Source: Bugula neritina
Taxonomy: Eukaryota > Animalia > Bryozoa
DNA length: 64,000 nt
Assembly: GCA_964035545.1 (NCBI GenBank)
Contig: OZ037772.1
Coordinates: forward strand, 10,166,818-10,230,817
Direction: 5' to 3'
The position numbers and the translations under genes were made by a program. The notes below the pieces were generated by a model. It did not search any database, was not told where the DNA came from, and was given only the letters and a program-made list of their open reading frames with translations. Positions 2,919 through 52,280 of the stretch are shown piece after piece. How positions within the stretch are numbered: the stretch's first letter is position 1; each line of letters begins with the position of its first letter.

Positions 2919-5900
2919 TCACTTCAGCTGATAAAACTTAACTTGTCCATTAGAAGAGTGTACTGGAACTACTAGAGTAGAGCCAGTGATGTGGAGATCA
3001 GGTATGTAACTCTTTATAGTAGATATCCTGGTTAGTAACTTGCCTGTAGAGATAAAATTCATAATGTTCTTTTTTAGGAATCAAAGATAATATTAAAAGA
3101 GTGCAGTTTATTTGTAGGAAATATATAAATATGAATGAACTCATTTTATCATATTATAACACATATATTTCATACACTATGTGTATTCTACACAGTAACT
3201 AACCTGTATGTAATGATAGTACACAGAGTGTGATAGGTTCAGCATCATCAGCCACAAGTACAAACTCATCTCTATAGCAGGTCACTCCACAAGGTTCAGC
3301 CACTTCCTTACACTGCCAGATAATGTCACCTGATGTGGTGTCTACTTTGTATACTAGAGATGAGTGATACTGAGATATAATAATTGAGTTATTATCTGCA
3401 GCAGACAGATGTACAGCAGTATCAGTGAGTAGAAGACAGGGTAAAGTGTTTACTACCTCCCCATTCAGAGAGTAGAATACTAGAGTTTTATTCAGCCTGT
3501 CAGGAATAGCTATCTGATTGTTTATGATGGCAAGTTGATTTACCCACTCTGATTTATTATCTGTATGAGTCCAGCTGGTGATGAATCTCCCTTTAAGGTC
3601 ATGAACTCTTACAGTTGAATCAGAAAACAGAGTATATATCCTATCATTATGTACTGAGATACTCATCACATTGCTACCTTTAATAGAGATGAATGATTTA
3701 GTTACTTTGTTGTTCTCATCTATCCTGTGTACACCTTCATAACACCCAGCATATGTGATACCTTTATAGGTGTGAACAGAATAGCAGTGTGGAGAAACTT
3801 TTGCAGTGCTTATCAGTTCCGCAGTCTTGGGTGGTGGAGGTGAGACAACCAGTCCTTGTTCAGGAGTTATACTTGCAGTTCTTTCATTGGTCAGCTCAAT
3901 CTCTGTATCTCTTTTTTCTTCTGTAATAAAAATATTGACATGCATGACATAGTAATATATTATAAAAGCAGCTGATACATCAGAAAAACTAGCAGATATG
4001 TAAACATACATGCATATTTTTGGGCTCCGCTACACAAACAGCAGTGCTAGCAACACTGCAATGATCATGCACTTTTCATTTAAAAATTAATTTTATAAGT
4101 TTGATCTTTTAGACCAAATTATTTTTATGGGAACCAACTATTGAATAAAAATCACTGCAGAAAAAAATCAGCAGCTGTGTTCATGTCAACAAATTATTAA
4201 AATCAATTCTAATGATATTCTATTTAGTGATATACTACTATATTAAATTAGGTTCTGTTCACCAATTAACTTGTATTAGTATTCTCCAAGAGTATAAGCA
4301 CAGCTATTGCACAAGTGTGTAAATCTATATAATGTAGTTGAAAGAAGTATACATATTGGGGGAGATGTAGGCCACTTCCTCCTCAGTGAAAATTAATTAC
4401 TAAAGATTCCCACTAACATTATTTACCATATAACTTGGTTTAATAGGATCTTGTAGGGGTGTAGTGTGGCAATAGTACAAACCCAGTTTTGAAAATAATA
4501 GTGTCTTAATTTAAATCAGTATTTGTAATGTATTTTTATAACACGGATCAATAGAGTGAAATACCAGATGATGAAAAAGTAACAGTTGGCAACATAGCTA
4601 TAGCTTACATACAAATATACCTCAAATTCACAAGTCAAAATATACTTACTTGATCATGTTACCTAATTACGGTTAGATAAAAAACTTCCTAAAGATAAAT
4701 AGGATTATTGAGCCATTCAATATCTTGTTTTAAGTAGTTTTGCATATTGATAGCATAAAAATGACCTTTAACATCTATAAAACTGACCTTTGACCTCTAC
4801 AGATGCTACAAGATCAAAATGTGCCAACTTAGGAATCTCTTCTGTCAACAGTCTATCAATCTCCTTCTTCATGTCACGATATGACTTGATGATGTCAACC
4901 TAACAATATTATATATACACACAATGTGACACTGTGTAGCAGGTGTCTAAGAGTTGTCTGCTATTATAGAGAATGCTAGAATTGAGTATAGACATTGAGA
5001 ACAACAACAATGCTGTGTTTGACACCAACTAAACCATCTAAAAGCAGCATTACAATGCAAAAGATTGCAGGATCGAGAGTGAAAAGCCCAATTCATAGGA
5101 AAAAAAAGCTTCTACAAACTAATTGGCAGACTTTACACTAATTATATGCCCTATAGTATTATACAGTGTGCTATAATATTATACAGTACCCTATGGTATT
5201 ATACAGTGTTCTATAGTATATTATACAGTGTGCTATAGTATTATACAGTGTGCTATGGTATATTATACAGTGTACTATAGTATTATACAGTATCCTATAG
5301 TATTATACAGTATCCTATATATAGTATTATACAGTATATTCCTATATATAGTATTTATACAGTATCCTATAGTATTAAACAGTGTCCTATAGTAGAAAAT
5401 TATTTTAGTTACATTATATCTATTTATATTATTTAAATGATCTATAGATGTTATATAAAATAGTCAAACTGCTACAGATACACACACCATAGCATCTACT
5501 ATCCATACTCTGTAGCTAACCTCATGACTTTGGTCTAACTTAGCCTCTATTCCTTCTCTGTGATTATAAAGCTTACAGTATCTAACCCCCACTTCCTCAC
5601 CATGAAGTTCACTGCTTGACTCTCAGTCTTTTCTCTCTTCTCCACCAGTTCTTTTTCCAGTTTGTCATACTTCTGTTGAATAGCTGCTATCTAAATACAG
5701 TCACATTAAATATAGGAGAAGATAGTTTGGTTTGAGGAGTGTCTGAGTGTATAATCATCTTGCATCTACCAAAAAAGTAGCTTATCTCAGATGATTATAA
5801 AAAAACTATAAACAAACTCTCACAGTTACTATATGATCTTTATAATTATCAAATTTAAAAACCATGTAATAGTCACCTGATCATCACGCTGTTTACATAG

Positions 5901-7351
5901 CATCCCCAGTAACTTTTTGGTTTCAGCTCTAAACTCATCAATGTTTGCAGCTATCTGTTTGTAATATCCAGATAAGTTGTCTTCTCTTGCCTTCAACTTT
6001 GTGACTTCCACTAGCTGCATTGTTAAATCCTTCAATGTCAAGAGTGTATGCTGTGATGTACCTAAAGTAATATATACAAAGTATAATGTATAAGCTGTTG
6101 TGTACCTGAATCATGTAATATATATTGCAAGTAAACAGAAGAATAGACACTTACCATCGACACATACCCCAGCTGTAGGTACACACTGAGTACAGAGTAG
6201 CTTGAGACAGACTTTACAACCCAAAGTATACTCTACGTCTGCATGTGTCTCACACATTCTCTTCTCTAATTTAGCAGCACGAGCTTTATACTCTGTCATA
6301 TTTATTCTAGAATGTTCCTCGGCCAGATTGTCATGGTCCTAAGACAAATATATACAAAAGAGTTTGTGGCTTACTAACGATTTTACATCTAAGATTGCAT
6401 ATAATATACATTATAATGGTCCTAATGTCATGATCATATAATGCCTAAAGTATATATGCAATAGTATACAATTTAAAAATATTTAAAGATATATTGTACA
6501 ATCTATTACAATAAAAGCATGGATGTAAGAAATCAATCTTGAGAGTTATGTCTCCTTGATCATAACTTTTATCTTATGTATAATAAACTACAGCATGCTG
6601 ATCGATAAATTTTAGGAGGTAAAGACACAAAACCAATTCATGTAAGCAAATGAGTGAAAACAAGTGAAACCAAATGAATGTTTTCGATTGATGAATCAAA
6701 TCAAATATTGTAAATAATTTGTTGCAAAGCTGATTAAATTATTTCTCTGCAAAGTATCACCAAAATCTCAAGCTTTCAGTTTCAAAATATCACATATAAA
6801 GATATACACACAGAAAACACGAAAAATAGTGTTAACTTACAATGACATGTTTAGCACAGTACAGTTTGGAACAAACTAAACAATACATCAGAGCAGGTGT
6901 GTTATTAACTCCTGACTTTGTACAGACTTCACAAAGTATAGACTTATCTATCTGTTTCATCTGGTCTGCTGTTGGTAACTTATCAGGTGTTGTATTGAAC
7001 ACTTGTCTGTAACATAAATGATAAATTTATTGTTGATATATCATCAATTAGTTTTATCTTAGAGAACATTTATCAATCAACACTCATAGTATAATTTGCT
7101 CTGTTCCACCTCGTGATATTATATCAACTGTAATATATACTAGACAGCAGACGTAGCGAAAACCACATAGCAAATACTTTGACATAAACTTACCGACATA
7201 TTCCACATTTAAGAGCATTTAGCCTTCCATAAAATTCATTCAAACACTTGTCACAGTGTGGGTGAGTACAAGGCAGTGCCTTAATTTCCTCTAACTTGAG
7301 TTTAGATAAACAAATAGTACATCTCACCATCTGTTGTGGTTTGGATGCCAT
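2919..7351 (-). pseudogene. TRIM-like RING/B-box/B-box/coiled-coil/NHL-like propeller gene, copy 1; frameshifted in exon 5
   Basis: Exons 7351-7194 (C3HC4 RING: CTIC...CTHPHCDKC...CGIC), 7006-6841 (B-box), 6338-6155 (B-box), 6061-5877, 5690-5521, 4899-4788, 3920-3204 and 3043-2919, all GT-AG. Exon 5 is 170 nt versus 171 nt in copies 2 and 3 (ttcctcaccat vs ttcctctaccat), giving a premature TAG at 5547-5549. Confidence 0.85.
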
Positions 7352-7916
7352 TTTGTTCTACAATTACATCATATTAGGACGACACAATCATGTTGATCAC
7401 AATGATTTCAGAGCAGTTATCAATACTTATACAAGTGGATGGCAAGAGAATTAAAAGAAGATTTGGACATTGCCCAAGTTAAAAGAACAGCAAACAATTC
7501 TATCACCAACTATCTGATATTAATATTGAATTATTTACATCTACATCTAGCAAGGGCTGACACTAGACTAGGTAGTAACTTTGCGTTCGAGGCTGTCGTC
7601 ATTTCGACTGTGGTGTTAACCAACTTACAGTTAGTGATTCATTAACGTTCAACCTATTATTGTTAAAGTTAATAATTAATTCATTATGAAAATGACAATA
7701 CCTTTATCGTTCATTTTGATATTAGTTGAGTGAGACTGAGAGCAAGCATTGCAATCTGCCAGTCACAATCACAATGACAATCACAGTGGCAATGATGTAT
7801 TTTTAAAACTAATGACAATCACAATGTGATGGATGATTACAGTTAATGTTATAACCATAATCCTAATAGCTAAAGGTAAAAGTTGAATGTAAATATGGTA
7901 AATTAAAATTGACTCA

Positions 7917-8100
7917 CCAAAAAAGTGTTCACTGAGTGACTCAGGTTCTTCAATTCTAATAGTAATTGTGTTCAATCGAATGGATATGATTGACCTACTT
8001 CTAGTTCTACTCAAAACTGCTTTGCAAGCTGCTGCGAGGAAGTTGAAAATGAAACGGCGCTACAGATGAGTAATAGAAATTTCCCGAGTTGGAAATTTTA
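7917..8100 (-). promoter_or_regulatory. Putative TRIM non-coding first exon and promoter with ISRE-like and kB-like motifs, copy 1
   Basis: Donor GTGAGT at 7916-7911; GAAAATGAAAC at 8045-8055; GGGAAATTTC (minus strand) at 8076-8085; TGACTCA near 7937. Confidence 0.45.
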
Positions 8101-9043
8101 CGTGCTCGTAGATAAAGTCTGCAAAACAGACGTTGCTGAATCATTTGTTTACCGGGAATAATTCCGATGTTACATTAGCCGAAAGCTGTACTGCATTTGA
8201 CGCAACAGCGATGTGAAGAGCAGACTACTCTTACACTACAATTCTCTCTCAATAGCAATAATATAATAACTATTATCCATCAGTTATTAAAAGCTAACAC
8301 ATTTCTTTATTCAAAATCTTAAGCATCCGAAACAAATTGTTTATTACATTGCATTGGTAGCTGCATATCCTAAGAGGAGTAAAATGTTTGGCCAAAAAAG
8401 TCACAAATCTGTGCATTAACCATCTAACACTGACCTGCACCTTTCTCTATTACTACTATGAGTTATACTATATTACAGACTTGAAATAAATTGTAGTCAG
8501 TGGAGTCAGTGAATCATTTCCTTTTATTGGCTTTGCAGAATATTTTCTTGCTTATATCCAATATTTTAGTCACATCAAATGATATAGTATGACTCTAACA
8601 AGTAGCATGTAATGGCGAAGGTATATAGAAGCTTATAAGATTTATATACAGGTATTTTATAGTTGTGTATTTTACTTTTTATATCAAAAGCATATCATGT
8701 AACCTGCCAGTATATTAACATATCCCAATCGTTGTCACATACTGGAGACCATTATAAACCAACAACTAATAAAATGAAACTTGCTTATCATTGTCATTTG
8801 TCATCTTTGACCTAGTTTAAATACAAACCAATCAGAATTGATTTAAATACTGAGATTTATTTACAATAATACAAAAGTCATAAACTCTAAATGATAAAAA
8901 CTATAGTAGGCTATATAATATAACTATAATAAATTATTCAGCACTTTGACACAATGTCCGCTGTGACTTAGTGCACTCTGTTTATCACACTGACTAGGTT
9001 GAGACGGGTACAAGTTACTCGTACAGTACAATACTAGATAGCC

Positions 9044-11032
9044 TCAGCTCCCCTTGGCTACTTTCTTCAACTGGTGCCACCACTCCAAACTCTTATTGTT
9101 GGTATTGAGAGAATGCTGAAGCTCTCTCCAATGTTCAGCTCCTCTCTTGTCACCGTCTGCACTGATGTACACTCTACCAACCACCTGTCAAGTATAAGTG
9201 TCGGTATGTATTCATAGTGTGTGAGCAGGTGCCCAGCAGGTACCATAAAAGGAGTTGACTACAGGACTCCTGCTGATTGTTAGAAACTGAGCAAATTATA
9301 ATTATTAAATGTTTTAATTTCTGAGCATTCCTGTTCAAAATATTTATTATAACCACAAAATTTCTTTCCAAATTTACCAAAATTTTTATAAAAATAAAAT
9401 TTAAACACTAATTATTGTTAAAGTATTATTAAACGAAAGGCAACCGAGCATTATAGCAATATAACTCAAATGTTCAAATGAGTCTAAAGGACTTAAACTC
9501 AGCCTTAACATAGCTCGAGTTTCCAGGTTATGCTATAGAAATGTTGATATATGAAATAATATCTACAGAACAGCGGAACTCCTTGGTAGACGCCCTCACC
9601 TCATAACTACTGATTTTCACTTTACACAAGTCTACGACTATACTCATATCAGCTAGTTTCACGTGTTGAGGCAGAGCTAGAACTATCTCCTGGTTGAAGA
9701 GTGGATTAGTAGTCACTTTGATGTTATCTATAGTACGTTTCTTCTTCAACTTCTTTCCATCTTCTAGCACCGTCACTCTTACCGTTAGGCCTGTAATATT
9801 TTTAAAAATTAAGAGTTTTAGCATCTGATAATCATAAAATATATCATATTCCTATAAAATATATTATATCTCTATAAAAATTAGTCCCTGCCACGCAGGA
9901 GTTGCACCACACAGCTCCGGCTTACAAGTAAGCACGCTACCATCGCACCACAGGGGCTGCTGGGTAAACTCAACAATACGTCCCACCCAGTTCTCTAGAA
10001 ATTTGCTGGCTCTTTTACTACTGCCTTAGACATCTGCCTCCCCCTCTCCACCCCCCCCCCGTCTTTCAATCACCTTGGATTACTATAACTGCTATAAAAC
10101 TTTACGAAATAACATGTAAAACTTTTTCCCCCACTAGGATTTAAACCCAAGACGAGTCCTCCGAGTCGGAAGGAAGTATGCTACCATTGCACCACATGGG
10201 GCTCTCTTTCATTATCCTTTCAAAATTAAACCCTTTTGACACTTAAAAACAATTTCAAAATCTGACTGTTAAACATGGAATATATTATAAAATTTCAAAA
10301 GTTTAATTATCCAATAATTATAAAATATGCATCACTCTTTTTATATGCACTTTAGTGAAAATTGTATATTGTTCACATTAACACAGCTTTTAAAGCATCA
10401 GCTATCTTTGAAGTTGCTTACCCAGTACTGCGATTTCGTCTTCTATGTGTAAATCTTTTGCTTTAGCAAAAAAAAGGTGAGCGTAAGATTATCTTTAGCC
10501 TTTGTGCTCTTCATGGAAAACAGCAGCTCTCCGACATAATTCTAAAGGATAATTTGGAAAACATATATAATACTATTATAAATAAATAAATAAACAAATA
10601 GAGTCCTGTACACATATACACTTTGCAGCTTGCATTTAATATATATTTACATTTCTTTTGCATACATTATAAACACATTTCATCTAACTACATAAAAACA
10701 TATTAATTTATGATGAATGCAACACACAGGTGCATTACATATGCATAATGTAAATACTATAATATTAAATGTTATATTTATAATTATATGTAGTTTTATT
10801 TTATTTACAATACTGTATTCACTGTATACTGTGAATTTTAAATAATGAAATATATTCACCTCTTCATGGTCATGTGACTCAGGTAGACATCTGTCAATGT
10901 GTTTCTCTACGTATAATGACTCATCATGTGGTAGACTATTTAAACGTAGTTGGACAACTCCAACTTTCTCCGTCTTCACAAACTGATCGTAGTCATACAG
11001 GTGACATAACAGATGTTTCCCTGAGAGATCAT
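9044..11032 (-). pseudogene. Synaptotagmin-like C2 gene, 3' half only (end of C2A plus C2B), copy 1
   Basis: Exons 11032-10860 (LYDYDQF..KVG), 10541-10422, 9790-9600 (KKLKKKRT..NPLFNQE) and 9184-9044 (EHWREL...WWHQL*, the synaptotagmin WHxL terminus). No upstream TM or early-C2A exons. A 1-nt deletion in the A-run at ~10468-10475 relative to copies 2 and 3. Confidence 0.8.
9886..10205 (-). mobile_element. Dimeric tRNA-like SINE relic in the synaptotagmin intron (also 54815-55135; collapsed to one unit at 37625-37695)
   Basis: Two tRNA-like heads (TGGTGCRATGGTAGC...GGTGCAACTCC / GGTTTAAATCC). Copy 2 is deleted between the repeated ctaccattgcaccaca. Confidence 0.55.
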
Positions 11033-11171
11033 CTAATTGAATACAGAACACCAGAATATTGCTGTGATTCTAGTAATAATACAGTCGAGTGATAAAAACA
11101 CTCATTTCACAAGCATGTAACAGAAACAAAATTCGACATAATAGGTGGGATGATAGACACCGAATACAGTG

Positions 11172-11326
11172 CACTACTGTACTTACTTGATAAATACTAT
11201 ACCACTGTATTTACTTAGTAAATACTATACCACTGTACTTACTTAGTAAATACTATACCACTGTACTTACTTAGTATATACTATACCACTGTACTTACTT
11301 AGTAAATACTATACCACTGCACTTAC
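11172..11326. repeat. 28-bp minisatellite, ~5.5 units
   Basis: Unit ACTATACCACTGTACTTACTTAGTAAAT, abutting the PTGES2 exon 7 donor. Confidence 0.9.
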
Positions 11327-14261
<2,935 letters not shown>

Positions 14262-14555
14262 CTTTGTTAAATGTACGAATTTGATCAGCTGTAGTAGCCT
14301 TCGCTTGATAAATACTCTACCCTTACAAATTGTGAAGCTGGCTTAGGTGAATATTTAGAGGCAACTTTAGGCTATTTAGAGTACAATAAGGTCGTTTTTA
14401 ACACCAGTATATTAGCAACTAGCCGGTGTCTTTAAAGACGCAAATAGTTCTGAGTTATGTAATACGCGCATTCGTAGAGCATAACTCCTTCTTATTTGCG
14501 CAGAGGCGAGGCGAGTCAAATAGTGCACTAGCTCCGGTGTGATGTAAGATTATCC

Positions 14556-16868
<2,313 letters not shown>

Positions 16869-16876
16869 GATTATCC

Positions 16877-19356
<2,480 letters not shown>

Positions 19357-19854
19357 GATTATCCCAATAAACTAAAACTTCTTTTAGTTGTAATTATCGT
19401 TCAACGATTATACCCTTTGAAGAGCATTCTCCGTAATGATCATAGATCAATAAACACACTAGAATCTCAGATCAAAATAATAATAGCTATAGCTATAATA
19501 GTTTAAGATTTATACTAAAAAACAAGTTTATTCGGTGTATTTTTTATCAGCAACCAGAGAAACTTGATAAAATACATCCAGCTAAATTTGTAGCCCAAGT
19601 TTGATTAATGAAGGATGTCATTAACCCCTGGTGACTTCCAATCTCAATTCACAAAAGAAGCATTAGTATATAAAATTTATAAATAAATGTGTAACTAAAT
19701 TGTGTAAATTAACAAAATTATGGATATACAGAAAAATACACTATATTCAGATTGGAAATGTACAGTTTACAAAAATAGGCTGAGTATTTGTATCATATAT
19801 GCAATGTGCTGAAAATGAGAAATTAAGAAGATATTATATAAGTATAATGAGAGA

Positions 19855-20061
19855 AGGAAGCAAATGTGGTCTAGCAGTTAGAGCGTTTACTTAGTGACAA
19901 ACCCTGACAAAGGCCATTGGAGATGTTAGGAAGAGCATCCAGTCATAAATGCTCCTTTGTCTCATCTGAACAAGTTCTTAGCCGGATTCAACAAAAAAAT
20001 TTCCAGCAGGAGTTTCTCACAGGGATAGCGACTATAAACTTGCGTGAATGAGTTGTTTAAG
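19855..20061 (+). mobile_element. tRNA-derived SINE
   Basis: Box A-like TGGTCTAGCAG, core GGAAGAGCATCCAG, flanking direct repeat taatgagaga. Absent in copies 2 and 3; related copy at ~48870-49050. Confidence 0.7.
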
Positions 20062-20602
20062 TAATGAGAGAGTGCACAATATTCTGTTAGAAGCATGTAA
20101 ATTATAGCCTGAGTTTCAAGTCAACTGGTGAATAGGAAACTAAAATGAGCAGTAATTCTATAGTGAAGGAACAGGTTCAGCCTATGATCCAACCATGCAT
20201 GTAGATAGTTTCTAGAGAAGAGAATTCCTCTAGCATGCCTAAAATTAGTAAATGAAAAGCTACAATAACAACTATACATTGAACGAAATAAGCTAATTTA
20301 CATAAATCAGACTTTGATGTACAGAAAGACTAATAGTAAAACTATATATTACATATACCCCATAATCTACGTCTTATATTTGTTCTTGATTGAAATAATA
20401 TAGACTGAAAGAAAGTATAAGCTGCACAGCATAAATTATCTGACATAATATATATGTCTACTATACGCTACACTACACTGCGCTGTACTGCACTGCACTG
20501 CACTGCACTGCACTACACTGCACTATACCGCACTACACTACACTACACTGCACTGCACTGCACTGCACTACACTGCACTACACGACACTACACTACACTA
20601 CA

Positions 20603-22732: not shown

Positions 22733-25700
22733 TCACTTGAGCTGATAGAACAGAACTCGGTCATTAGGAAAACGTACTTGAATTACTAGAGTAGAGCCAG
22801 TGAGGTGTAGATCAAAAATGTCACTGTACTTAAGAGGTAGCCTGGTTAGTAACTTGCCTGTTGAGATAAAGGACATAATTAATGTTCCTCTATAGGAATC
22901 AAAGATAATATAAAGAGAGTGCATTTTGTTTGTAGGAAATATATAAATTATATGAATGAACTAATTTTCTCAAATAACAATGCAGGTATATTGTAGACTA
23001 TGTGTATTCTACACAGTAACTAACCTGTATGTAATGATAGTACACGGAGTGAGGAAGGTTTAGTATCATCAGCCAGAAGTACAAACTCATCTCTATAGCA
23101 GGTTACTCCACGAGGTGTAGCCACTTCCTCACACTGCCAGATGATGTCACCTGATGAGGTGTCTACTTTGTATACTAGAGATGAGTTAGGTTGAGATATA
23201 ACAATTGAGTTATTATCTGCAGCAGACAGACATACAGGAGTATCAGTAAGTAGAGGACAAGGTAGAGTGTTTACTACCTCCCCAGTCAGAGAGTAGAATA
23301 CTAGAGTCTTATTCAGCCTGTCAGGAATAGCTATCTGATTGTTTATGATGGCAAGCTGATTTATCCACTGGAGTTTATTATCTGTATGAGTCCAGCTGGT
23401 GATGGACTTTCCTTCAAGGTCATGAACTCTCACAGTTGAATCAGAAGACAGAGTATATATCCTATCATTATGTACTGAGATACTCATCACACCTCCATAC
23501 TTATGAATAGAGATGAATGATTTGGTTACTTTGTTGTTTTCATCTATCCTGTGTACACCTCCATCACACCCAGCATATGTGACACCTTTATAGGTGTGAA
23601 AAGAGTAGCAGTATGGAGAAACTTCAACAGCTTTTATCAGTTCTACAGCCTTGGGTAGTGGAGGTGAGAGAACTAGTCCTTGTTCAGGAGTTATACTTGC
23701 TGTTCTTTCATTGGTTAACTCAATCTCGGTATCTCTTTTCTCTTCTGTAATAAAATATTGACATGCATGACATGGTAATATAATATAAAACAGCTGATAC
23801 ATCAGAAAAACTAGCAGATATGTAAACATACATGTATATATTTACACATCACTACACAAACAGCAGTGCTATAGCAACACTGCAATGATCATGCATTTTC
23901 CATTTGAAAATAAATATTATAATTTTGACAGTTTAGACCAGATTATTTTTATGGGAATCAACTATTGAAAAAAATTTACTGCGGAAAAAAATCAGCAGCT
24001 GCATGCATTCATGTCAACAAAATATTAAAGTCAATTCTAATGATATTCTATTTAGTGATATACTACTATATATTAAATTAGGTTATGTTCACCAAAAACT
24101 TGTATTAGTATTCTCCAAGAGTAAGCACAACTATTGCACAAGTGTGTAAATCTATAGAATAGTTGAGAGAAGCTTACAGATGGGGGAGATGTAGGCCACT
24201 CCCTCCTCAGTGTAAATTAAACACTAAAGATTTCCAATAACATCATTTATCTTAAAACATAGTTTAATAGTAGTTTTAGAAAATGTTAGTTCCTTCATCA
24301 TGTTAAGTTAAAATATTAGATATAATATATTGTTATAACACAGGTCAATAGAGAGAAATGCCAGATGAGGAAAATGTAACAGTTAGCAACATATAGCTTA
24401 CACACATAATACACCTTCAATCTAAAAGTCAAAATATTCTTCCGTGATGATTTTACTTATAAATACGGCAAGATACAAAGTGTCATAAAAATGAAAAACT
24501 CTTATAGTTCTATTCAATATCTTTTAAATAATTTTGCATGGATAACATATAAAACCAACCTTTCACTTCCGCAGATGTTACAATACCAAATCGTGTCAAC
24601 TTAGGAATCTCTTCTGTCAACAGTCTATCAATCTCCTTCATATCACGATATGACTTGATAATGTCAACCTAACAATATTACATATACACACAATGTGACA
24701 CTGTGTAGCAGGTGTTATAGAGTTGTCTGCTATTATAGAGAATGCCAGTGTTGAGAATGAACAATGAAATCAACAACAATTCTATATTTGACACACACAA
24801 ATTCATCTAAAAAGCAGCATTGCAATGCAAAAGACTGATGGATCGAGATTGCTATGCCGTATTAGGGAAACAGACTACTGCCAACTATAAAGGGGTAAGG
24901 TTTATTCTAATAAACTGTACCTTAAGGGAGCACAGATTTCAAAGCTGACGCTAATGTGCAGTGGGCTATGCTATTAAATACAGTATCCTAATATAGCATT
25001 ATACAGCATCTTCTAGTATTATACAGTATTGTATAGTATTATACTGCAGTATCCTACTATACCATACAAAGTGCTATAGTATTATACAGTATCATATAGT
25101 GTTATGTAGTGTCCTATGGTACTATACAGTATGCTATGATATTAAAAGTACTATGGTATTATTGTATTATACAGTATCCTACGGTATTATAATACAGTGT
25201 CATATAGTGTTAGTACACTGGGTACCTTGCAGACCGACAGCAAATAAAATGGAATACTCTGGTGACTGGAGGCCACTCAGTAAAACTTAACTTGGGCTGA
25301 GCCACAATGACAGCATTTTTCAAATTAATTCATTCCAAATTCTTATAAATCATTACACAATGAAGTCCCATTAACTACTACAGGCTGCATGTTTTAGCAT
25401 GCATACAAAGATACATGTATTTAAAAAGTATTTTTTCCACTCTAATTTATATATCTGATAGAGCAACATAATTTTATGTTTATGCCTTTGAGGGTGGCAT
25501 AAATGTTGGACAGTCCTGTGTTATACAGCATGATATGTTATAGTACAGTTCCATTACTGCCTCTATTGGTTATTACCTGATCCATTTTCTACTTATGTAC
25601 TCTTTAGATGTTATTTACAGATAGAGAAACAATGAATATAGACTTTATATAAAGACATTGAAATATATAAAACTGTTACAGATCCTAACATCTACTATAT

Positions 25701-27544
25701 ATGCTCTGCAACTAACCTCATGACTTTGGTCTAACTTAGCCTCTATTCCTGTTTTGTGATTATACAGCTCACAGTATCTAGCCCCAACTTTCTCTACCAT
25801 GAAATTCACGGCTTGCCTCTCAGTCTTTTCTCTCTTCTCCACCAGTTCTTTTTCCAGTTTGTCATACTTCTGTTGAATAGCTGCTATCTAAATACAGTCA
25901 CATTAAATGTTAGACAAGCTAGAATAGTTTGAGGAGTGACTGAGTGTATAACCACCTTGCATCTACCAAAAAGTAGCTTATCTCAGATGATTATAAAAAA
26001 GCTATAAACAAACTCTCACAGTTTCTATATGATCTTTATAACTATCAAATTTAAAAACCATGTAATAATCACCTGATCATCACGCTGTTTACATAGCATC
26101 CCCAGTAACTTTTTGGTTTCAGCTCTAAACTCATCAATGTTTGCAGCTATCTGTTTGTAATAACCAGATAAGTTGTCTTCTCTTGTCTTCAACTTTGTGA
26201 CTTCCACTAGCTGCATTGTTAAATCTTTCAATGTCAAAAGTTTATGCTGGGATGTACTTAAAGTAATATATACAAAGTAATGTATAAGCTGTTGTGTACC
26301 TGAATCATGTAATATATATAGCAAGTAAACAGAAGAATAGACACTTACCATCATCACATACACCAGCTGTAGGCACACACTGAGTACAGAATAGTTTGAG
26401 ACAGACTTTACAACCCAAAGTATACTCTACGTCTGCATGTGTCTCACACATTCTCTTCTCTAACTTAGCAGCGCGAGCTATATACTCTGTCATATTTATT
26501 CTAGAATGTTCCTCAGCCAGATTGTCATGGTCCTAAGACAAATATATACAAAAGAGTTTGTGGCTTACTAACGATATTACATCTAAGATTGCATATAATA
26601 TACATTATAATGGTCCTAATGTCATGATCATATAATGCCTAAAGTATATATGCAATAGTATACAATTTAATAATATTCAAAGATATATTGTACAATCTAT
26701 TACAATAAAAGCATGGATGTAAGAAATCAATCTTGAGAGTTATGTCTCCTTGATCATAACTTTTATCTAATGTATAATAAACTACAGCATGCTGATCGAT
26801 AAATGTTAGGAGGTAAAGACTCAAAACCAATTCATGTGAGCAAATGAGTAAAAACAAATGGAAACAAAAAAATGTTTTCAATTGATGAACCAAATCAAAT
26901 ATTGCAAACAATTTGTTGCAAAACCATTAAATTATTTCTCCGCAAAGTATCACCAAAATCTCAAGCTTTTAGTTTCAGAATATCACATGTAAGGATATAT
27001 ACACAGATGACACTAAAAATAGTGTTAACTTACAATGACATGTTTAGCACAGTACAGTTTGGAACAAACTAAACAATACATCAGAGCAGGTGTGTTATTA
27101 ACTCCTGACTTTGTACAGACTTCACAGAGTATAGACTTATCTATCTGTTTCATCTGGTCTGCTGTTGGCAACTTATCAGGTGTTGTATTGAACACTTGTC
27201 TGTAATATAAATGATAAATTTATTGTTGATAGATCATCAATTAGCCACATAGCATACAGTATTTAATATCCTACGTTCATAGCATAATTGGCTCTGTTCC
27301 ACCTTGTGATATTCTATTAACTTTAATATATACTATACAGTAGACGTAGCGAAAACCAAATCACAAATACTTTAACATAAACCTACCGACATATTCCACA
27401 TTTAAGAGCATTCAGCCTTCCATAGAATTCATTCAAACACTTGTCACAGTGTGGGTGAGTACAGGGTAATGCCTTACATTCCTCTAACTTGAGTTTAGAT
27501 AAACAAATAGTACATCTCACCATTTGTTGAGGTTTAGATGCCAT
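22733..27544 (-). CDS. TRIM-like RBCC-NHL gene, copy 2; exon 4 acceptor mutated, possibly non-functional
   Basis: Exons 27544-27387, 27199-27034, 26532-26349, 26257-26073, 25887-25717, 24668-24560, 23744-23025 and 22857-22733. Exon reading frames are open, but the exon 4 acceptor is ttaaG rather than ttagG (position 26258). Confidence 0.8.
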
Positions 27545-35272: not shown

Positions 35273-35669
35273 CTTGGATGCACTATCCCACTGCTGCCAC
35301 CACTGTTGTAATCTTCAGATTTAGGGTTGATATGCTATCCAGAGAGTCTATTTATCTAGTATAGAACTGCACCAGGCTAAGTCGAGTGAACGAGTATATT
35401 TTATACACAATGATACATTACAAAAACACGATACATTATTTCTAACAGGTTACACATCTAATCTATTTCACACTCTAGCTTCGACTGAGTTAGCAGCGGG
35501 AAACTACAATTGCTGCTAACTATCAACTACGCTAATTGGCTATCCATTGTTCCGGGTCAATTACGCGACCCTACATGTTGTGCTGCTGGTAGTTCCACGA
35601 ACCACCACACCAGTAATAGTAAAAGTAGAAGTTGAATATCAATAATATGGTAAATTAAAATTGGCTCAC

Positions 35670-38676: not shown

Positions 38677-39139
38677 TACTACTGTACTTACTTAGTAAAT
38701 ACTATACCACTGTACTTACTTAGTAAATACTATACCACTGTACTTACTTAGTAAATGCTATACCACTGTACTTACTTAGTAAATACTATACCACTGTACT
38801 TACTTAGTAAATACTATACCACTGTACTTACTTAGTAAATACTATACCACTGTACTTACTCAGTAAATACTATACCACTGTACTTACTTAGTAAATACTA
38901 TACCATTGTACTTACTTAGTAAATACTATACCACTGTACTTACTCAGTAAATACTATACCATTGTACTTACTGAGTAAATACTATACCATTGTACTTACT
39001 TAGCAAATACAATACCACTGTACTTACTTAGTAAATACTATATCACTGTACTTACTTAGTATATACTATACCACTGTACTTACTTAGTAAATACTATACC
39101 ACTGTACTTACTTAGTATATACTATACCACTGTACTTAC
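38677..39139. repeat. 28-bp minisatellite, ~16.5 units
   Basis: Same unit as 11172-11326. Confidence 0.92.
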
Positions 39140-42130
<2,991 letters not shown>

Positions 42131-43470
42131 CTTTGTTAAATGTACGAATTTGATAAGCTGTAGTAGCCCTCGCTTGAGAAAAACTCTACCCCTACAGATT
42201 GTGAAACTGGCTTAGGTAAATATTTAGAGGCAACTTTAGGCTATTTAGCGTACATTAGGGTCGTTTTTAACACCAGTATATCATCAAATAGCCGATGTTT
42301 TCAAAGACGCAAACGGTTTTGCGTTATGTAATACACGGATTTAGATAGAGCATAACTCCTTCTTATTTGCGCAGGGGCGAGTTAAATGGTGCACTAGCTT
42401 CGGTGTGATGTAAGATTATCCCAATAAACTAAAACTTCTTATAGTTGTAATTATATTTCAATGATTATACCCTTTGAAGAGCATTCTCCGTAATGATCAT
42501 AGATCAATAAACACACTAGAATTTCAGATTAAAATAATAATAGCCATAGCTATAATAGTTTAAGAATTATACTAAAAAGCAAGTTTATGGTAGGTTTAAT
42601 ATTTGGTGTGATTTTTTATCAGCAACCAGAGAAAGTTGATAAAATACATCCAGCTGAATTTGTAGCCCAAGTTTAATTAATGAAGGATGTCATTAACCCC
42701 TTGAGATCTCCAATCTCAATTCAAAAAGAAACATTATTATACAAAATTCATAAATATATGTGTAACTAAATGGTGTAAATTAACAAAACTATGGATATAT
42801 ACATAAAAAATACAATATATTCAAATTGGAAATGCATAGTTTACAAAAAATAGACCAAACATCTGTATCATATGCAATGCGCTAGAAATGAAAAATTAAG
42901 AAAATGTTATGTAAGTAATGAGAGACTGCACAATATTCTGTTAGAAGCATGTAAATTATAGTCCGATTTCCAAGTCAACTAATGAGTAGGAAATTAAAAT
43001 GAGCAGTAATTCTATAGTGAAGGGACAGGTTCAGTCTATGATCTAACCAGGGATAGTTTCTAGAGAAGAGAATTTTTCTAGCATGCCTAAAAATAGTACA
43101 TGAAAGCTACAATAATGATTATACAGTGAACAACATAAGCTAATTTACATAAACCAGACTTTGGTGTGCAGAAAAAATAACAGTGAAACTATATACTACG
43201 TATACCCCATAATCTACGTCTTATATTTGTTCTTGATTGAAATAATATAGACTCAAAGCAAAGTATAAGCTGCACAGCATAAATTATCTGACATAATATA
43301 TAATATGTCTACTATACGCTACACTGCACTGCTACATGCACTGCACTATACTACATGCACTGCACTGCACTACATGCACTGCACTGCACTACACTACACT
43401 ACATGCCCTGCCCTGCACTGCACCGGCAGGATACTATCTTATATACTATAATGCACTTACGCCTATCAAT

Positions 43471-43929: not shown

Positions 43930-43973
43930 GTATACGAGAAACATTGTTACTTATTATTTTATTAGGTAAAGTA

Positions 43974-45358: not shown

Positions 45359-45468
<110 letters not shown>

Positions 45469-46066
45469 TATATATATATATAATGTGATAATAATGAATA
45501 AAATACAGTGCTTGTAAAACTTTAGCGCATCACATGGTTACAGTCTGTCTGTAGTCCACTGCAAAGCAAAAACATGCTGATGCAGAGGGGGGTACTTGAC
45601 ATAGTTGACTGAATAAAGAGTTTTGGTGTACTGGGAAGGTAACTCCTTATGTATGACTCAACATGATGTGTTCTACAAAACACAGCAGAGATGTCTAGTA
45701 TATAGTATATAATATATCTGCCATGTTATAATAATATAATACTATATATGAGACGTTAGTATACATCGTATGCAAATTGTAAACAGCTGCTTTATAATTT
45801 AACTATTGATTGATAACTAATCAGGGGAGATAACTGGTAATAATGTGCACACTACTAGGTAACCAACAATATTATTATAATACTATAGAGAGTCATAATA
45901 TTTCTATGCAATAAAATGCAATTCAACACACAATATTATACAACAAGATGCAATGTAAAACTACTCAATACAAAGCAGCATTAGCAAGATGAATTAGTAA
46001 GGCACTCAGTACCTCTCACAACATTTACTGACCTTTATTAGAGTATCCCAGACATTTAGTTCACCT

Positions 46067-49000
46067 TCACTTCAGCTGGTAGAACTTGACTTGTCCATTA
46101 GAAGACCAATCTGAAACTACCAGAGTAGAGCCAGTGAGGTGTAGATCATGTATGGAACTGTTTTCAGTAGATATCCTGGTTAGTAACTTGCCTACCAAGA
46201 AAAACAGCATGATGTTCTTTTTTTAAGACTCAAAGATAATATAAAGAGAGTGCAGTTTATTTGCAGCAAATAACTATAAATATGAATGAACTCATTTCAT
46301 CAAATTATAACACATATATTTCATACACTATATGTATTCTACACAGTAACTAACCTGTATGTAATGATAGTACACAGACTGTGTTACGTACAGCATCATC
46401 AGCCACAAGTACAAACTCATCTCTATAGCAGGTCACTCCACAAGGTTTAGCCACATCCTTACACTGCCAGATGATGTCACCTGATGAGGTGTCTACTTTG
46501 TATACTAGAGATGAGTGACGCTGAGATATAATAATTGAGTTATTATCTGTAGCAGACAGACGTACAGAGGTATCAGCGAGTAGAGGACAGGGTAGAGTGT
46601 TTACTACCTCCCCATTCAGAGAGTAGAATACTAGAGTTTTATTCAGCCTGTCAGGAATAGCTATCTGATTGTTTATAATGGCAAGCTGATTTATCCACAA
46701 GAGTTTATTATCTGTATGAGTCCAGCTGGTGATGGACCTCCCTTCAAGGTCATGAACTCTTACAGTTGAATCAAAAGACAGAGTATATATCCTATCATTA
46801 TGTACTGAGATACTCATCACATGACCACCTTTAATAGAGATGAACGATTTAGTTACTTTGTTGTTCTCATCTATCCTGTCTACACCTCTACCACACCCAG
46901 CATATGTAACACCTCTATAGGTGTAAACAGAATAGCAGTCTGGAGAAACTTTAACAGAGTTTATTAGTTCTACAGACTTGAGTGGTGGAGGTGAGACAAC
47001 CAGTCCTCGTTCAGGAGTTATCCTTGCTCTCTTTTCATTGGTCAATTCAATCTCTGTATCTCTTTTCTCTTCTGTAATAAAATATTGACATGCATGACAT
47101 GGTAATATAATATAAAACACGGCTGATACATCAGAAAAACTAGCAGATATGTACACATACAGGTATATATTGGTGCATCACTACACAAACAGCAGTGCTA
47201 TAGCAGCACTGCAATGACCGTGCACTTTTCATTTAAAAAATTATTATTACAATTTTGCTTTCCGTACCAGATTATTTTTATGGGAATCAACTATTAAAAA
47301 AATTTAAAAAATCAGCAGCTCCCTTCATGTCAACAAAATATTAAAGTCAATTCTAATGATATTCTATTTAGTTTGTTTGTTTGTTTGTTTGTTTGGTTTA
47401 TTTCATCAAAGGTATTTAATAACACAAGGACATTAGAAAATGCCAAGGAGGCGATGATGAGGCCCATTGCGCTATAGCCTAGCTAGTCATGCGCGGGCCA
47501 ACACGAGCTGACAGCGACTCTATCCAGAAAAATACAAAAAAAATACAACTATTCTAACAGATAAAGCCTCAACTTCCTCCCAAATTCATTAGGGTTGCTA
47601 ATTGACCGTAAAGGGATTGGCAGTTCATTCCATAGTGCCACCTCCTGATAACAGTTTCTTCTGTGACCTGCTGCTGTTTGAGAGTGAGGAAGGGGGAGAT
47701 TTATGAATGATTGACGTGTATTGATAGAGTGAGTGGGAAAAAAATTGTCAGAGTAGAAAAAAGAATGAGCTTTCTTTAACACTTTAAAACGGTAAATCTG
47801 GTATATTGAGAGAACTTTATGCTTAGTAAATAGAGGCGCTGATGGATGGTCAAACGGTTTTTTGTTCATGATACGCATTACCTTTTTTTGAAAAATAAAA
47901 ATCTTGTTTAGATGGGTATTAGCTGCATTTCCCCAGGCCTCTGCACAATAATTTAACTTGGAATTGATGAAAGAATTATATATCAAAAGTAAAATTTTTT
48001 GAGGGAGATATTCAGAACATCGGTATATTAATCCACTAAGTGGTCGTAATTTTGTAAGTAGGTTTGAGATGTGCAAGCTCCAATTTAAATTTTTATCTAT
48101 TTGTACACCTAGAAAAGTTATGCTGTTAGAGTAATTTATAGGTCTTTTATTTAATAATATACAGTTTTCTAGAATTTGAAAAGGATTTTGGTAGTTTTTT
48201 AAAACAATATAGTTGCATTTTTCATAGTTTATAGTGAGTTTGTTTTTATTGCACCAAATTGACAGAGAGTTTAGATCTTGATTTATAGCTTCCAAATGGG
48301 AGTTCAAATCTTTTGATTCAAAAAATAAATTAGTGTCGTCGGCATAGAAAATGGGATTAAAAAGTTTAAATTGTTGAGCAAGATCGTTTATATATATCAA
48401 AAATAAGGTAGGGCCCAAGACAGATCCCTATATTAAATTAGGTTATGTTCATCAAAAACTTGTATTAGTATTCTCCAAGAGTAAGCACAGCTATTGCACA
48501 AGTGTGTAAATCTATAGAATAGTTGAGAGAAGCTTACAGATTGGGGGAGATGTAGGCCACTTCCTCCTCAGTGTAAATTAAATACTAAAGATTCCCACTA
48601 ACATTATTTACTTCAAAACTTGGTGTAATAGTATTTTGTAGGTATGTAGTGTGGCAATAGTATATAAACCCAGTTTTGGAAAATATCATTATATAGTAAT
48701 GCTTTCATCATGTTAAATTAAACTATTATATATAATGTATTTTTATAAGACAAATATATAAAGTGAAATACTAGTCAAACGCGCTAACTCCTAAACTGAG
48801 GCTGCTCCTAAAAATATATGTCCTCGCTTAGGGCATATTTCTGAGAGCAGCCGGAGTCTATGAGTTAGATCGATTGCTCAGTAAGCACAAAGTCAAGGAT
48901 TCGAGCCCGGACAAAGGCTATTGGTGATGTTAGAAAGAGCATCCAGTCATAATTGCTCCTGTGCCTCATTTAAATAAGTCTTTAGCCCTCTTTAACAAAA

Positions 49001-52000
49001 ACCTCAGGGGTTTCTCACAGAGATGGTGACTATAGACTTGCAAGAGTTTTTTTATATTGAGTGAAATACCAAACGAGGAAAATGAAAATGAAAATGTAAC
49101 AATTAGCAACATATAGCTTACATACATAATATACCTGAAATCTAAAGGTCAAAATATACTTCCGTGATGATGTTATTTAAATACGACAAGACATAACAAA
49201 ATGTCATAAAATGACCATTTATTATAGTTCTATTCAATATGTTGTTTTAAATAATTTTGCATGGAAAACATATAAAACCAACCTTTGATTTTAACTGATG
49301 TTACAAAATCAAAATCCATCAACTTAGGAATCTCTTCTGTCAACAGTCTATCAATCTCCTTCTTCATATCACGATATGACTTGATGATGTCAACCTAACA
49401 ATATTAAATATACAGACAATGCGACACTGTGTAGCAGGTGCTTGGGAGTTGTTTGCTTATATTATCGAGCATGTCAGGGTTGAGTATGGACAATGAGATC
49501 AACAACAATGCTACATTTGACACTAACAAAACCATCTAAAACAGCAGTGCAATGCAAAACGTTGAAGGATAGAGATTGCAATGCAGTATAAGGGAAACAT
49601 ACTTCTACAAACTAATGGGTAAAGTTTAAGATAATAAACTGTACCCTAAGAAAGCACAGATTTCAAAATTGACAGTGTGCTATATGGTATTAAATACAGC
49701 ACCCTAATACAGTATTATAAAAAATAGTATATTGTGAAGTGCCCTATACGATTATACACTATACTGTATCATATGGTATTAACTATTATACTGCAGCATC
49801 CTACAGTAGTTTACAGTATTCTATGGTATTATACAGTAACGTATAGTATTATATAATGTCCTATAGGACTATATATAGTACTATATACAGTATCCTATGA
49901 TATTATAAGTATTAATTATGGTATTATTGTATTATACAGTATCCTACGGTATTATAATACAGTGTCATATAGCGTTATAGTACCGGGTGTCAAACCTTTT
50001 CAGACCGAGGGCAAATGAAGTGAAATATTCTAATGACAACTACCAGTCTGTTAAACTTAGCTTGAAATGTGAAAACGGTGACAGTATTTTTTTAATTGCT
50101 TCATTCAAAATTCTTATAAATCGTTACACAATGAAGTCCTATTAACTAATACAGGCTGTATGTTTTAGCAATGTATACAAAAAGGCATTTAATTAAGGGT
50201 GTTTTTCCACTTTAATTAGCATATCTGAGCAAAAAACTTTGCTTTATGTCTTTGAGGGTGGCATAAATGTTGGACAGCCCTATATTATAGTAGTCCCATT
50301 ATTGGTCATTACCTGATCCATTTTCTACTTATATAATCTTTAGATGTTATTTACAGATAGAGAAACAAGAAATATAGAAACTATATAAAGACACTGAAAT
50401 ATTGCATAAAACTGCTACAGATCATAACATCTACTATCCATACTCTACAACTAACCTCATGACTTTGGTCTAACTTAGCCTCTATTCCTTCTCTGTGATT
50501 ATACAGCTCACAGTATCTAGCCCCCACTTCCTCTACCATGAAATTCACTGCTCGACTCTCAGTCTTTTCTCTCTTCTCCACCAGTTCTTTCTCCAGTTTG
50601 TCATACTTCTGTTGAATAGCTGCTATCTAAATACATTCACATTAAATGTTAGACAAGTTAGAATAGTTTGAAGAGTGTCTGAGTGTATAACCATCTTGCA
50701 TCTATCAAAAAGTAGCTTATCTCAGATGATTATAAAAAAGTTATAAACAAACTCTCACAATTTCTATATATGATCTTTATAATTATTAAATTTAAAAACC
50801 ATGTAATAATCACCTGATCATCACGCTGTTTCCATAGCATCCCCAGTAACTTTTTGGTTTCAGTTCGAAACTCATCAATGCTTGCAGCTATCTCTTTGTA
50901 ATAACCAGATAACTTGTCTTCTCTTGTCTTTAACTTTGTGACTTCCACCAGTTGCATTGTTAAATCTTTCAATGTCAAGAGTGTATGCTGTGATGTACCT
51001 GATGTAATATATACAAAGTAATGTATAAGCTGTTGTGTACCTGAATCATGTAATATATATAGCAAGTAAACAGAAGAATAGACACTTACCATCATCACAT
51101 ACCCCAGCTGTAGGTACACACTGAGTACAGAGTAGTTTGAGACAGACTTTACAACCCAAAGTATACTCTACATCTGCATGTGTCTCACACATTTTCTTCT
51201 TTAACTTAGCAGCACGAGTTTTATATTCTGTCATATTAATTCTAGAATGTTCTTCAGACACAATATCATGATCCTAAGATAAATATATACAAAAGAGTTT
51301 GTGGCTTAATAATAATAGTATATCTAAGATTGCATATATACAATATAATGGTCCTAATGTCATGATCGTATAATGCCTAAAGTATATATGCAGTAGAATA
51401 CAACTTAATAACATTTAAAGATATATTGTACAATCTATTACAATAAAAGCATGAATGTAAGAAATCAATCTTGAGAGTTGTGTCTCTTGGTCATAACTTT
51501 TATCTAATGTATAATAAACTACAGCATGCTGATCGATAAATGTTTGGAGGTAAAGATGCAAAACCAATTCATGTGAGCAAATGAGTGAAAACAAGTGAAA
51601 CTAAATGAATGTTTTCGATTGATGAATCAAATCAAATATTGTAAATAATTTGTTGCAAAGCTGATTAAATTATTTCTCTGCAAAGTATCACCAAAATCTC
51701 AAGCTTTCAGTTTCAAAATATCACATGTAAAGATATACACAGATGACACTAAAAATAGTGTTAACTTACAATGACATGTTTAGCACAGTACAGTTTGGAA
51801 CAAACTAAACAATACATCAGAGCAGGTGTGTTATTCACTCCTGACTTTGTACAGACTTCACAGAGTATAGACTTATCTATCTGTTTCATCTGGTCTGCTG
51901 TTGGTAACTTATCAGGTGTTGTATTGAACACTTGTCTGTAACATAAATGATACATTTATTGTTGATAGATCATCAATTAGTTTTATCTTAGAGAACATTT

Positions 52001-52280
52001 ATCAATCAACGCTCATAGTATAATTTGCTCTGTTGCACCTTGTGATATTATATTAACTGTAACATATACTAGACAGCAGACGTAGCGAAAACCACATAGC
52101 AAATACTTTGACATAAACTTACCGACATATTCCACATTTAAGAGCATTTAGCCTTCCATAGAATTCATTCAAACACTTGTCACAGTGTGGGTGAGTACAA
52201 GGCAGTGCCTTAATTTCCTCTAACTTGAGTTTAGATAAACAAATAGTACATCTCACCATTTGTTGTGGTTTAGAAGCCAT
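46067..52280 (-). CDS. TRIM-like RBCC-NHL protein, copy 3, intact (~605 aa, putative E3 ubiquitin ligase)
   Basis: Exons 52280-52123, 51935-51770, 51273-51090, 50998-50814, 50626-50456, 49394-49283, 47071-46355 and 46191-46067. All are GT-AG and phase-consistent, totalling 1818 nt and ending FYQLK*. Confidence 0.9.
47372..48428 (-). mobile_element. 5'-truncated CR1/L2-group LINE in intron 6 of TRIM copy 3
   Basis: Open RT C-terminal ORF 47549-48418 (GSVLGPTLFLIYINDL, YADD, FLGV); AATAAA plus (CAAA)n tail. Absent in copies 1 and 2. Confidence 0.92.
48870..49050 (+). mobile_element. tRNA-derived SINE (same family), preceded by a short hairpin at 48780-48870
   Basis: Box B-like GGATTCGAGCCC; shares gacaaaggc.attgg.gatgttag.aagagcatccagtcataa with 19905-19950. 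Confidence 0.65.

Follow-up and report, generated by a model that had tools for sequence, protein, structure and literature searches.

Background

The TRIM family is split into an old, conserved group, which includes the NHL class, and a young, vertebrate-only group, which bears the B30.2 domain and is tied to antiviral defence (PMC2533329, PMC3137616). Fast evolution is a mark of the B30.2-bearing group, absent from invertebrates, whereas the NHL class is conserved (PMC2533329). Known TRIM-NHL proteins (class VII or subfamily C, with Brat, Mei-P26, Thin/TRIM32, TRIM2, TRIM3 and LIN-41/TRIM71) are slowly evolving developmental and RNA regulators encoded by three to five genes per genome (PMC4015489; "group 1" in PMC2533329). 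Here we analyse a stretch of 64,000 nucleotides of the bryozoan Bugula neritina (GenBank assembly GCA_964035545.1, 216,009,554 bases; contig OZ037772.1, chromosome 8 (C8), positions 10166818-10230817; called the window below), which holds three tandem genes that we assign to the NHL class. An initial annotation had read them as an array with an invariant RING and hypervariable propeller loops. Against the three to five genes of other genomes, Bugula harbors more than 150 propeller exons. Known TRIM-NHL proteins bind their ligands on the top face of the propeller, formed by d-a and b-c loops (PMC4015489), and nearly all sites under positive selection in Bugula sit in the same place. Tandem arrays and a positively selected top face set the Bugula family apart from the known members of the class.

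The mode of evolution resembles that of antiviral TRIMs, i.e. primate TRIM5 and TRIM22 and the teleost finTRIM, btr and hltr/TRIM35-like genes. These form tandem multigene arrays, undergo birth-and-death turnover and show positive selection in C-terminal surface loops, detected by the same logic of M1a/M2a and M7/M8 comparisons (PMC3137616), and the Bugula family is alike in all these respects. Antiviral TRIMs, however, carry the B30.2 (PRY-SPRY) domain at the C-terminus and are confined to vertebrates, whereas the Bugula family is lophotrochozoan and carries an NHL-type propeller instead. The Bugula genes would thus work like the antiviral families without being members of them. Antiviral function and inducibility were demonstrated for some vertebrate TRIM families; in the Bugula family they are hypothetical.

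A further parallel lies outside TRIM proteins. F-box and MATH-BTB families of nematodes and plants are expanded ubiquitin-ligase substrate adaptors under positive selection, proposed to constitute an innate defence repertoire. Like the Bugula genes, they combine a constant ubiquitination module with a fast-diversifying substrate-binding domain. They belong to other protein families and phyla, though, and act in cullin-RING complexes, whereas in Bugula the RING is part of the same polypeptide. In the literature, we found no paper on TRIM expansion in bryozoans or on positive selection on an NHL face, and no described immune receptor repertoire for Bryozoa.

The gene array and its transcripts

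The window consists of three tandem units of about 20 kb each (~2000-20600, ~21400-43400 and ~45500-60600), which are 87-94% identical at nucleotide level when the window is compared with itself. Each unit carries one eight-exon TRIM-NHL gene on the minus strand. Exon 1 encodes the RING, exons 2 and 3 encode B-box-like fingers, exons 4-6 a charged helical region or putative coiled-coil, and exons 7 and 8 the propeller, which is preceded by a linker of about 45 residues. The exons are given below, starting with copy 3; omega denotes the ratio of nonsynonymous to synonymous divergence (dN/dS).

52123..52280, minus strand: copy 3 exon 1, start codon and C3HC4 RING (ATG; GT donor; RNA joint 51935/52123 in runs X1, X2 and X4; weak Pfam RING match)
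51770..51935, minus strand: copy 3 exon 2, B-box 1 (flanking RNA joints; ANCHR-like B-box, E 2e-4; omega 0.18)
51090..51273, minus strand: copy 3 exon 3, B-box 2 (flanking RNA joints; zf-B_box, E 2.7e-4, under the Pfam cut-off; Cys/His invariant)
50814..50998, minus strand: copy 3 exon 4, putative coiled-coil part 1 (RNA joints 50995/51087 and 50626/50814; omega 0.32)
50456..50626, minus strand: copy 3 exon 5, putative coiled-coil part 2 (RNA joints 50626/50814 and 49391/50453; omega 0.25)
49283..49394, minus strand: copy 3 exon 6, putative coiled-coil end and linker (acceptor from RNA joint; donor from phase and GT)
46355..47071, minus strand: copy 3 exon 7, linker and blades 1-5, with 18 positively selected codons by site models (AG/GT, open frame; predicted local distance difference test score (pLDDT) 90; Brat NHL, Z 20.5)
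46067..46191, minus strand: copy 3 exon 8, last blade and stop (AG acceptor, 40-codon frame; M1a/M2a, twice the log-likelihood difference (2dlnL) 46.7)
27387..27544, minus strand: copy 2 exon 1, RING (one amino-acid change against copies 1 and 3)
27034-27199, 26349-26532, 25717-25887 and 24560-24668, minus strand: copy 2 exons 2, 3, 5 and 6 (span 24560..27199, which also encloses exon 4; in-frame 3-nt deletion in exon 6)
26073..26257, minus strand: copy 2 exon 4, acceptor AA not AG (AG in the other 14 copies with unbroken exon 4)
23025..23744, minus strand: copy 2 exon 7, propeller (open frame, 720 nt)
22733..22857, minus strand: copy 2 exon 8
7194..7351, minus strand: copy 1 exon 1, RING
6841-7006, 6155-6338, 5877-6061 and 4788-4899, minus strand: copy 1 exons 2, 3, 4 and 6 (span 4788..7006, which also encloses exon 5)
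5521..5690, minus strand: copy 1 exon 5, frame shifted by 1-bp deletion (170 nt against 171 in an alignment of 17 copies; outside homopolymer run)
3204..3920, minus strand: copy 1 exon 7, propeller (open frame)
2919..3043, minus strand: copy 1 exon 8 and stop

Contigs from four runs were examined on copy 3. The junctions from exon 1 to exon 6 were set by GT..AG joints in these contigs (three RNA-type runs from three studies), and the reading phases agree. For the donor of exon 6 and for the junction of exons 7 and 8, we relied on canonical splice sites and reading phase. The family is transcribed and spliced as modelled. The predicted protein has about 600 residues, and its relatives in the cheilostome bryozoan Watersipora subatra, the only species with named relatives (closest named proteins), have 563-626.

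The propeller exon has at least 151 matches genome-wide, which amounts to a tandem multigene family with lineage-specific expansion, as is typical of TRIM5 and finTRIM. About 36 of the matches are close paralogs (66-86% identity) and lie mostly in two C8 arrays, at 10.12-10.39 Mb on the minus strand and at 5.42-5.79 Mb on the plus strand; three of them are in the window. More than 100 further matches (25-44% identity) are located on other chromosomes. Among the 30 closest propeller exons, 29 are open, possess AG/GT sites and have a length that is a multiple of three. Seventeen paralogs were compared over full length, and the remaining paralogs of the local array entered the analysis through their exon 7/8 loci only.

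Identity of the domains

Database searches and fold prediction were done exon by exon, with the fold spanning five of the six blades. The RING exon follows the pattern C-x2-C-x13-C-x-H-x2-C-x2-C-x12-C-x2-C. All eight zinc ligands are invariant in 14 copies, in agreement with the conserved RING noted in the initial annotation, and the N-terminal C3HC4 RING of TRIM-NHL proteins is thereby present. Pfam RING models match the single exon with E-values of 8e-6 to 4e-4, slightly under the cut-offs. Exon 2 resembles the ANCHR-like B-box (E 2e-4) and exon 3 the zf-B_box (E 2.7e-4, 21.5 bits against a cut-off of 24.1). The B-box Cys/His positions are invariant among copies, and full-length Watersipora relatives give equally sub-threshold B-box matches. 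In exons 4-6, which together code for about 155 residues, charged residues are frequent and purifying selection prevails.

On the single propeller exon, the Pfam NHL repeat (PF01436) found no match, and there were only weak generic propeller matches. When a profile of 110 family members was used, the best solved structures were the NHL domains of Brat (E 2e-10), Thin (5e-10) and TRIM3 (7e-10), with the whole range for Brat, Thin, TRIM3 and TRIM2 being 2e-10 to 3e-9; the profile also matches NHL domains of TRIM71 and Mei-P26. The AlphaFold model of exon 7 has a pLDDT of 90.3 and a predicted template modelling score (pTM) of 0.85. After re-ranking with VIA-align, its eight best matches are TRIM-NHL domains without exception (Brat, Mei-P26, TRIM3, Thin, TRIM2; Z 19.8-20.5, root mean square deviation 2.4-3.2 A over 202-210 residues). 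The scores of YWTD propellers lie no more than one Z unit lower, so the fold alone is not decisive for NHL identity. A plain Foldseek search against PDB was non-discriminating, returning a mixture of WD40, NHL, YncE and BamB propellers, and language-model neighbours were NHL clusters, mostly molluscan. The hypervariable d-a loop is repeated six times, five times in exon 7 and once in exon 8, which implies six blades.

Profile and VIA-align matches thus point to a C-terminal six-bladed propeller of NHL type. Because this propeller follows a predicted RING/B-box/coiled-coil front, we identify the genes, from sequence profiles and the fold model, as divergent TRIM-NHL genes without a filamin domain. 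The predicted domain order is the same as in known TRIM-NHL proteins, which are the best profile and structural matches of the family, and the TRIM architecture with an NHL-type propeller proposed in the initial annotation is supported. Differences from known members include the unscored Pfam NHL repeat and the missing filamin domain, in place of which there is only the linker of about 45 residues.

Positive selection in the propeller

The three copies of the window differ from each other in an uneven manner. In the RING exon, copies 1 and 3 are separated by four synonymous and no nonsynonymous differences, exactly as counted before, and copy 2 deviates by a single replacement (I to C) that requires two nucleotide changes. 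The propeller exon shows exactly 39 residue differences between copies 1 and 3, the figure that had been obtained by hand count, and 41 and 44 in the other two pairs. The nine variable patches quoted in the initial annotation are all present in the translations, and the last exon has variable patches too. There are 14 columns with three states in three copies, nine of which are among the 18 positively selected codons described below.

Pairwise omega (Nei-Gojobori) for exons 1 to 8 is 0.14, 0.18, 0.35, 0.32, 0.25, 0.39, 0.80 and 0.84. Synonymous divergence (dS) is similar in all exons (0.13-0.22) and is lowest in exon 7 (0.13, against 0.19 in the RING exon), while the RING exon has only about a quarter of the nonsynonymous divergence (dN) of the propeller exon, although its dS is as high or higher. 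Medians of divergence of flanking introns and the 3' flank, 0.19-0.28, match dS. The propeller excess is therefore specifically nonsynonymous and does not result from regional differences in divergence or in gene conversion. Exons 1-6, predicted to encode the ligase and dimerisation half of the protein, are under purifying selection.

Site models were applied to 29 paralogous exon-7 sequences, each of which has an open frame, AG/GT sites and a length divisible by three. We used our own implementation (GY94, F3x4, fixed topology, nucleotide tree, branch lengths scaled as a set). The comparisons gave the following values of 2dlnL:

M1a against M2a, exon 7: 365.4
M7 against M8, exon 7: 394.4
M8a against M8 (extra class fixed at omega 1), exon 7: 338.3
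M1a against M2a, separate trees for three segments: 365.1
M1a against M2a, eight copies with no detected lesion: 115.6
M1a against M2a, control exons 1-6: 7.3
M1a against M2a, exon 8: 46.7

About 9% of exon-7 codons fall into a class with omega of 5.3-5.6. The posterior exceeds 0.95 at 18 residues of exon 7 (44, 46, 60, 82, 83, 85, 112, 123-126, 168, 170, 184, 185, 208, 210 and 227). Separate segment trees, which fit much better than the single tree, give nearly the same sites. In the eight undamaged copies, omega of the whole exon 7 is 1.09. No site of control exons 1-6 has a posterior above 0.95, and in exon 8, 15% of codons belong to a class with omega of 6.5. Propeller framework residues show omega of 0.36-0.45. 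A per-site test with free synonymous rate found 13 sites at p<0.05 and nine at p<0.01, against about 1.3 expected, and identified purifying selection at 34 codons. In sum, dN/dS reaches about 5-6 at about 18 codons in exon 7 and at about five in exon 8, and the earlier expectation of propeller sites with dN/dS well above 1 is confirmed by M7/M8 and related site models.

Position of the selected sites

The selected sites recur approximately every 40 residues, at two fixed places per blade. The first lies just ahead of strand a, at positions i and i+2 around the Pro-x-Gly of NHL, and the second is the turn between strands b and c. Although d-a and b-c loops account for 30% of the propeller, they hold 17 of the 18 sites (binomial 2e-8); residue 112, where a strand d begins, is the exception. 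Together, these two kinds of loop form the NHL top surface, which has an RNA-binding role in Brat (PMC4015489). In the profile alignment, selected residues 125 and 126 are opposite Y829 and P830 of Brat. The residue states at selected sites mix acidic, basic, aromatic and aliphatic side chains. The focus of positive selection on C-terminal contact loops, a feature of TRIM5 and finTRIM, is found here on another domain.

The variable sites thus cluster on one face, as the initial annotation had anticipated, and neither flanking introns nor synonymous sites diverge in step with the amino-acid changes. Low dN/dS, scattered sites and equally divergent introns had been set beforehand as findings that would speak against diversification of a recognition surface, and none of them was observed.

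Could the loops simply mutate more? The loop variation might stem from mutational hot spots in these places, or from conversion by other paralogs along very short tracts, and selection would only tolerate it. The 18 selected codons indeed have a pairwise synonymous divergence of 0.37, about twice the 0.19 of the rest, and in-frame insertions and deletions are concentrated in the same loops. However, the nine sites at p<0.01 keep nonsynonymous above synonymous change when synonymous rates are site-specific, and a raised mutation rate alone cannot give omega above 1. Further, every blade has its selected positions at equivalent points of the structure (i and i+2 around Pro-x-Gly), which points to function and not to DNA context. 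We therefore regard hot spots or short conversion tracts as quite improbable sources of the variation.

Damage and turnover of copies

Not all copies are intact as assembled. Copy 1 has the 1-bp deletion in exon 5, outside a homopolymer run, and the exon 4 acceptor of copy 2 reads AA instead of AG. The proposal that each copy is an E3 ligase consequently fails, since copy 1 is frameshifted and copy 2 lacks the acceptor; only copy 3 is free of a disabling change. Of the 17 paralogs compared over full length, nine contain disabling lesions. They comprise frameshifts from small duplications, lost splice sites, premature stops and broken propeller exons. With about half of the examined copies damaged, the family evolves by birth and death, with fast gain and loss of copies, and is no collection of uniformly working ligases. 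The exon-7 tree is star-like, with only 9% of its length in internal branches, and the two C8 arrays are intermingled in it.

Such decay invites an explanation without any adaptive diversification: constraint would be relaxed in decaying duplicates, while patchy gene conversion homogenises the 5' exons and leaves the propeller to drift. The frequent lesions, the star-like tree, high four-gamete incompatibility and the much better fit of separate segment trees all fit this scenario. Neutral decay, however, gives omega of 1 and not 5, and M8 is preferred over M8a by the 2dlnL of 338 listed above; omega far above 1 beside a strongly constrained framework, with 34 individually purifying codons in the same exon, cannot be explained in this way. 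Differential conversion is no explanation either, because propeller dS (0.13) is not above RING dS (0.19), and the divergence of flanking introns equals the dS level. All 29 intact exons differ in length by multiples of three only, and the signal survives in the eight undamaged copies. Drift of decaying duplicates is thus already disfavoured, and we give it the least credence of all explanations considered.

Two observations concern the history of the arrays. The exon-7 tree pairs paralogs across the opposite-strand C8 arrays (L003 with L007, L010 with L021, and L005 with L014), which fits inverted duplication of a whole array or exchange between arrays. The last 14 nt of exon 6 exist in two distinct versions among paralogs, the copy-3 type being present also in L036, L045, L047 and L050, which suggests exchange of short segments between copies.

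Possible function of the family

We consider it rather likely that this tandemly amplified, transcribed family of TRIM-NHL RING ligases is a germline recognition repertoire, probably diversified by conflict with fast-changing targets. Each intact paralog would then combine a differently specified binding face with the same ubiquitin-ligase module, and might ubiquitinate, or nucleate signalling on, a different bound target. The family would constitute a germline-encoded repertoire of intracellular recognition proteins, with its diversity probably maintained by conflict with viruses, mobile elements, microbial effectors or symbionts. A role in defence is suggested by analogy with TRIM5 and the multigene TRIMs of fish (PMC3137616).

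Several points weigh against such a repertoire. Firstly, no NF-kB, Relish-like or interferon-stimulated response element (ISRE) motif was found within 600 bp upstream of 10 copies, nor near the genes of the window; the single NF-kB match of the window sits in a retrotransposon and is at chance level. Secondly, the face was assigned from secondary structure and propeller topology, not from 3D coordinates. When it is defined from structure alone, its tree-free omega is 1.28 (95% confidence interval 0.84-1.92), not significantly above 1. The rest of the propeller gives 0.36 by the same estimate, a direction that agrees with the site models but is not decisive alone. Thirdly, our own implementation of these models uses naive empirical Bayes posteriors, a 6-category beta distribution and branch lengths fixed up to scale. 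In the four-gamete test, about 36% of the pairs of informative sites are incompatible, which indicates substantial exchange, reticulation or recurrent mutation among paralogs and can inflate likelihood-ratio tests. In a test of the pairwise homoplasy index (PHI) type, incompatibility was independent of distance (p 0.96-1.0), and conversion tracts are neither shown nor excluded by it. Finally, two of the three copies in the window are damaged as assembled.

A more specific version of the repertoire can be imagined. NHL top faces of Brat and LIN-41 bind RNA in a sequence-specific manner (PMC4015489 for the Brat top surface). By analogy, the array could be a germline repertoire of sequence-specific RNA-recognising ubiquitin ligases, with each paralog tuned to a different viral or transposon RNA. 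We find this version doubtful. If true, it would represent an innate, protein-encoded counterpart of nucleic-acid-guided defence, built on a domain that has so far been known from conserved developmental regulators alone.

Diversification of this TRIM-NHL repertoire might also serve a purpose other than defence. Individual paralogs could, for instance, each regulate RNA or protein in a specific manner, be it in the germline, in silencing of mobile elements, in zooid differentiation, in management of the bryostatin-producing symbiont or in colony compatibility. Known TRIM-NHL proteins (Brat, LIN-41, Mei-P26, TRIM2 and TRIM3) regulate development and use the same top face for RNA binding (PMC4015489). 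The lack of immune-type motifs in the searched upstream regions agrees with such a purpose, as does the origin of the transcripts, which come from ordinary colony or symbiont-study libraries and not from challenge experiments. On the other hand, dN/dS of about 5 at some twenty contact-loop sites, together with rapid birth and death, is typical of antagonistic coevolution and not of housekeeping regulation. Colony compatibility faces a further difficulty: allorecognition in colonial animals uses surface proteins, whereas TRIMs are cytoplasmic. A non-defence purpose is, in our opinion, possible but unlikely, and a recognition repertoire shaped by conflict remains the explanation we prefer.

Other elements in the window

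Besides the TRIM-NHL genes, the window contains several repeats and other exons, and scans of the window with Rfam models and for tRNAs found nothing. The following elements were recorded.

28108-35611: Ty3/gypsy-type long terminal repeat (LTR) retrotransposon in unit 2, upstream of the TRIM gene (GC content 50-57%, against 33% in the host)
28108-28415 and 35304-35611: its LTRs of 308 bp, 99.7% identical
47373-48428, minus strand: non-LTR retrotransposon reverse transcriptase fragment, in intron 6 of copy 3 only, with contigs in four of four runs
48906-49004: short interspersed repeat, ~135 bp long, within copy 3 intron 6
14548-19364: AT-rich block of about 4.8 kb (GC content 13-17%), composed of degenerate TA-rich repeats
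9531-14261: PTGES2-like exons and weak C2-domain exons of unit 1
38677-39141: minisatellite with 28-bp period in unit 2 (about 17 copies)
56101-56351: the same minisatellite in unit 3 (fewer copies)
11178-11491: stretch of unit 1 that aligns with the minisatellite

The near identity of the LTRs indicates a recent insertion of the Ty3/gypsy-type element. Its protease, reverse transcriptase, RNase H and integrase core are encoded in one frame, and the C-terminal SH3-like part of the integrase in another; open reading frames at 28701-29522, 29802-30392 and 34478-35272 (the last in the gag position) have no Pfam match. The short interspersed repeat reaches a contig depth of about 2e5 in all runs. 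A first look gave 2,693 candidate loci genome-wide, with matches of about 90% identity on every chromosome, and it has no tRNA or Rfam match. The AT-rich block is a large inverted repeat (14548-16427 against 19363-17578, 87% identity) and occurs in unit 1 only, whereas units 2 and 3 run directly from ~42423 to 42906 and from ~59548 to 60042. Every unit harbors PTGES2-like exons, comprising an N-terminal exon and a glutaredoxin-like exon (E 4e-8), plus weak C2-domain exons, and the minisatellite is located between the C2-like and the PTGES2-like exons.

Implications

In Bugula, the supposedly conserved NHL class of TRIM proteins takes the form of a very large family with fast turnover and a positively selected ligand face. 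If the family is indeed a recognition repertoire, then it would represent an independent invention of the strategy of TRIM5 and finTRIM on a different scaffold. It would also offer dozens of natural variants for studying how the ligand of an NHL propeller is specified. For the biology of the animal, which is the source of bryostatin, it would provide a starting point for the study of bryozoan immunity or of symbiont control.

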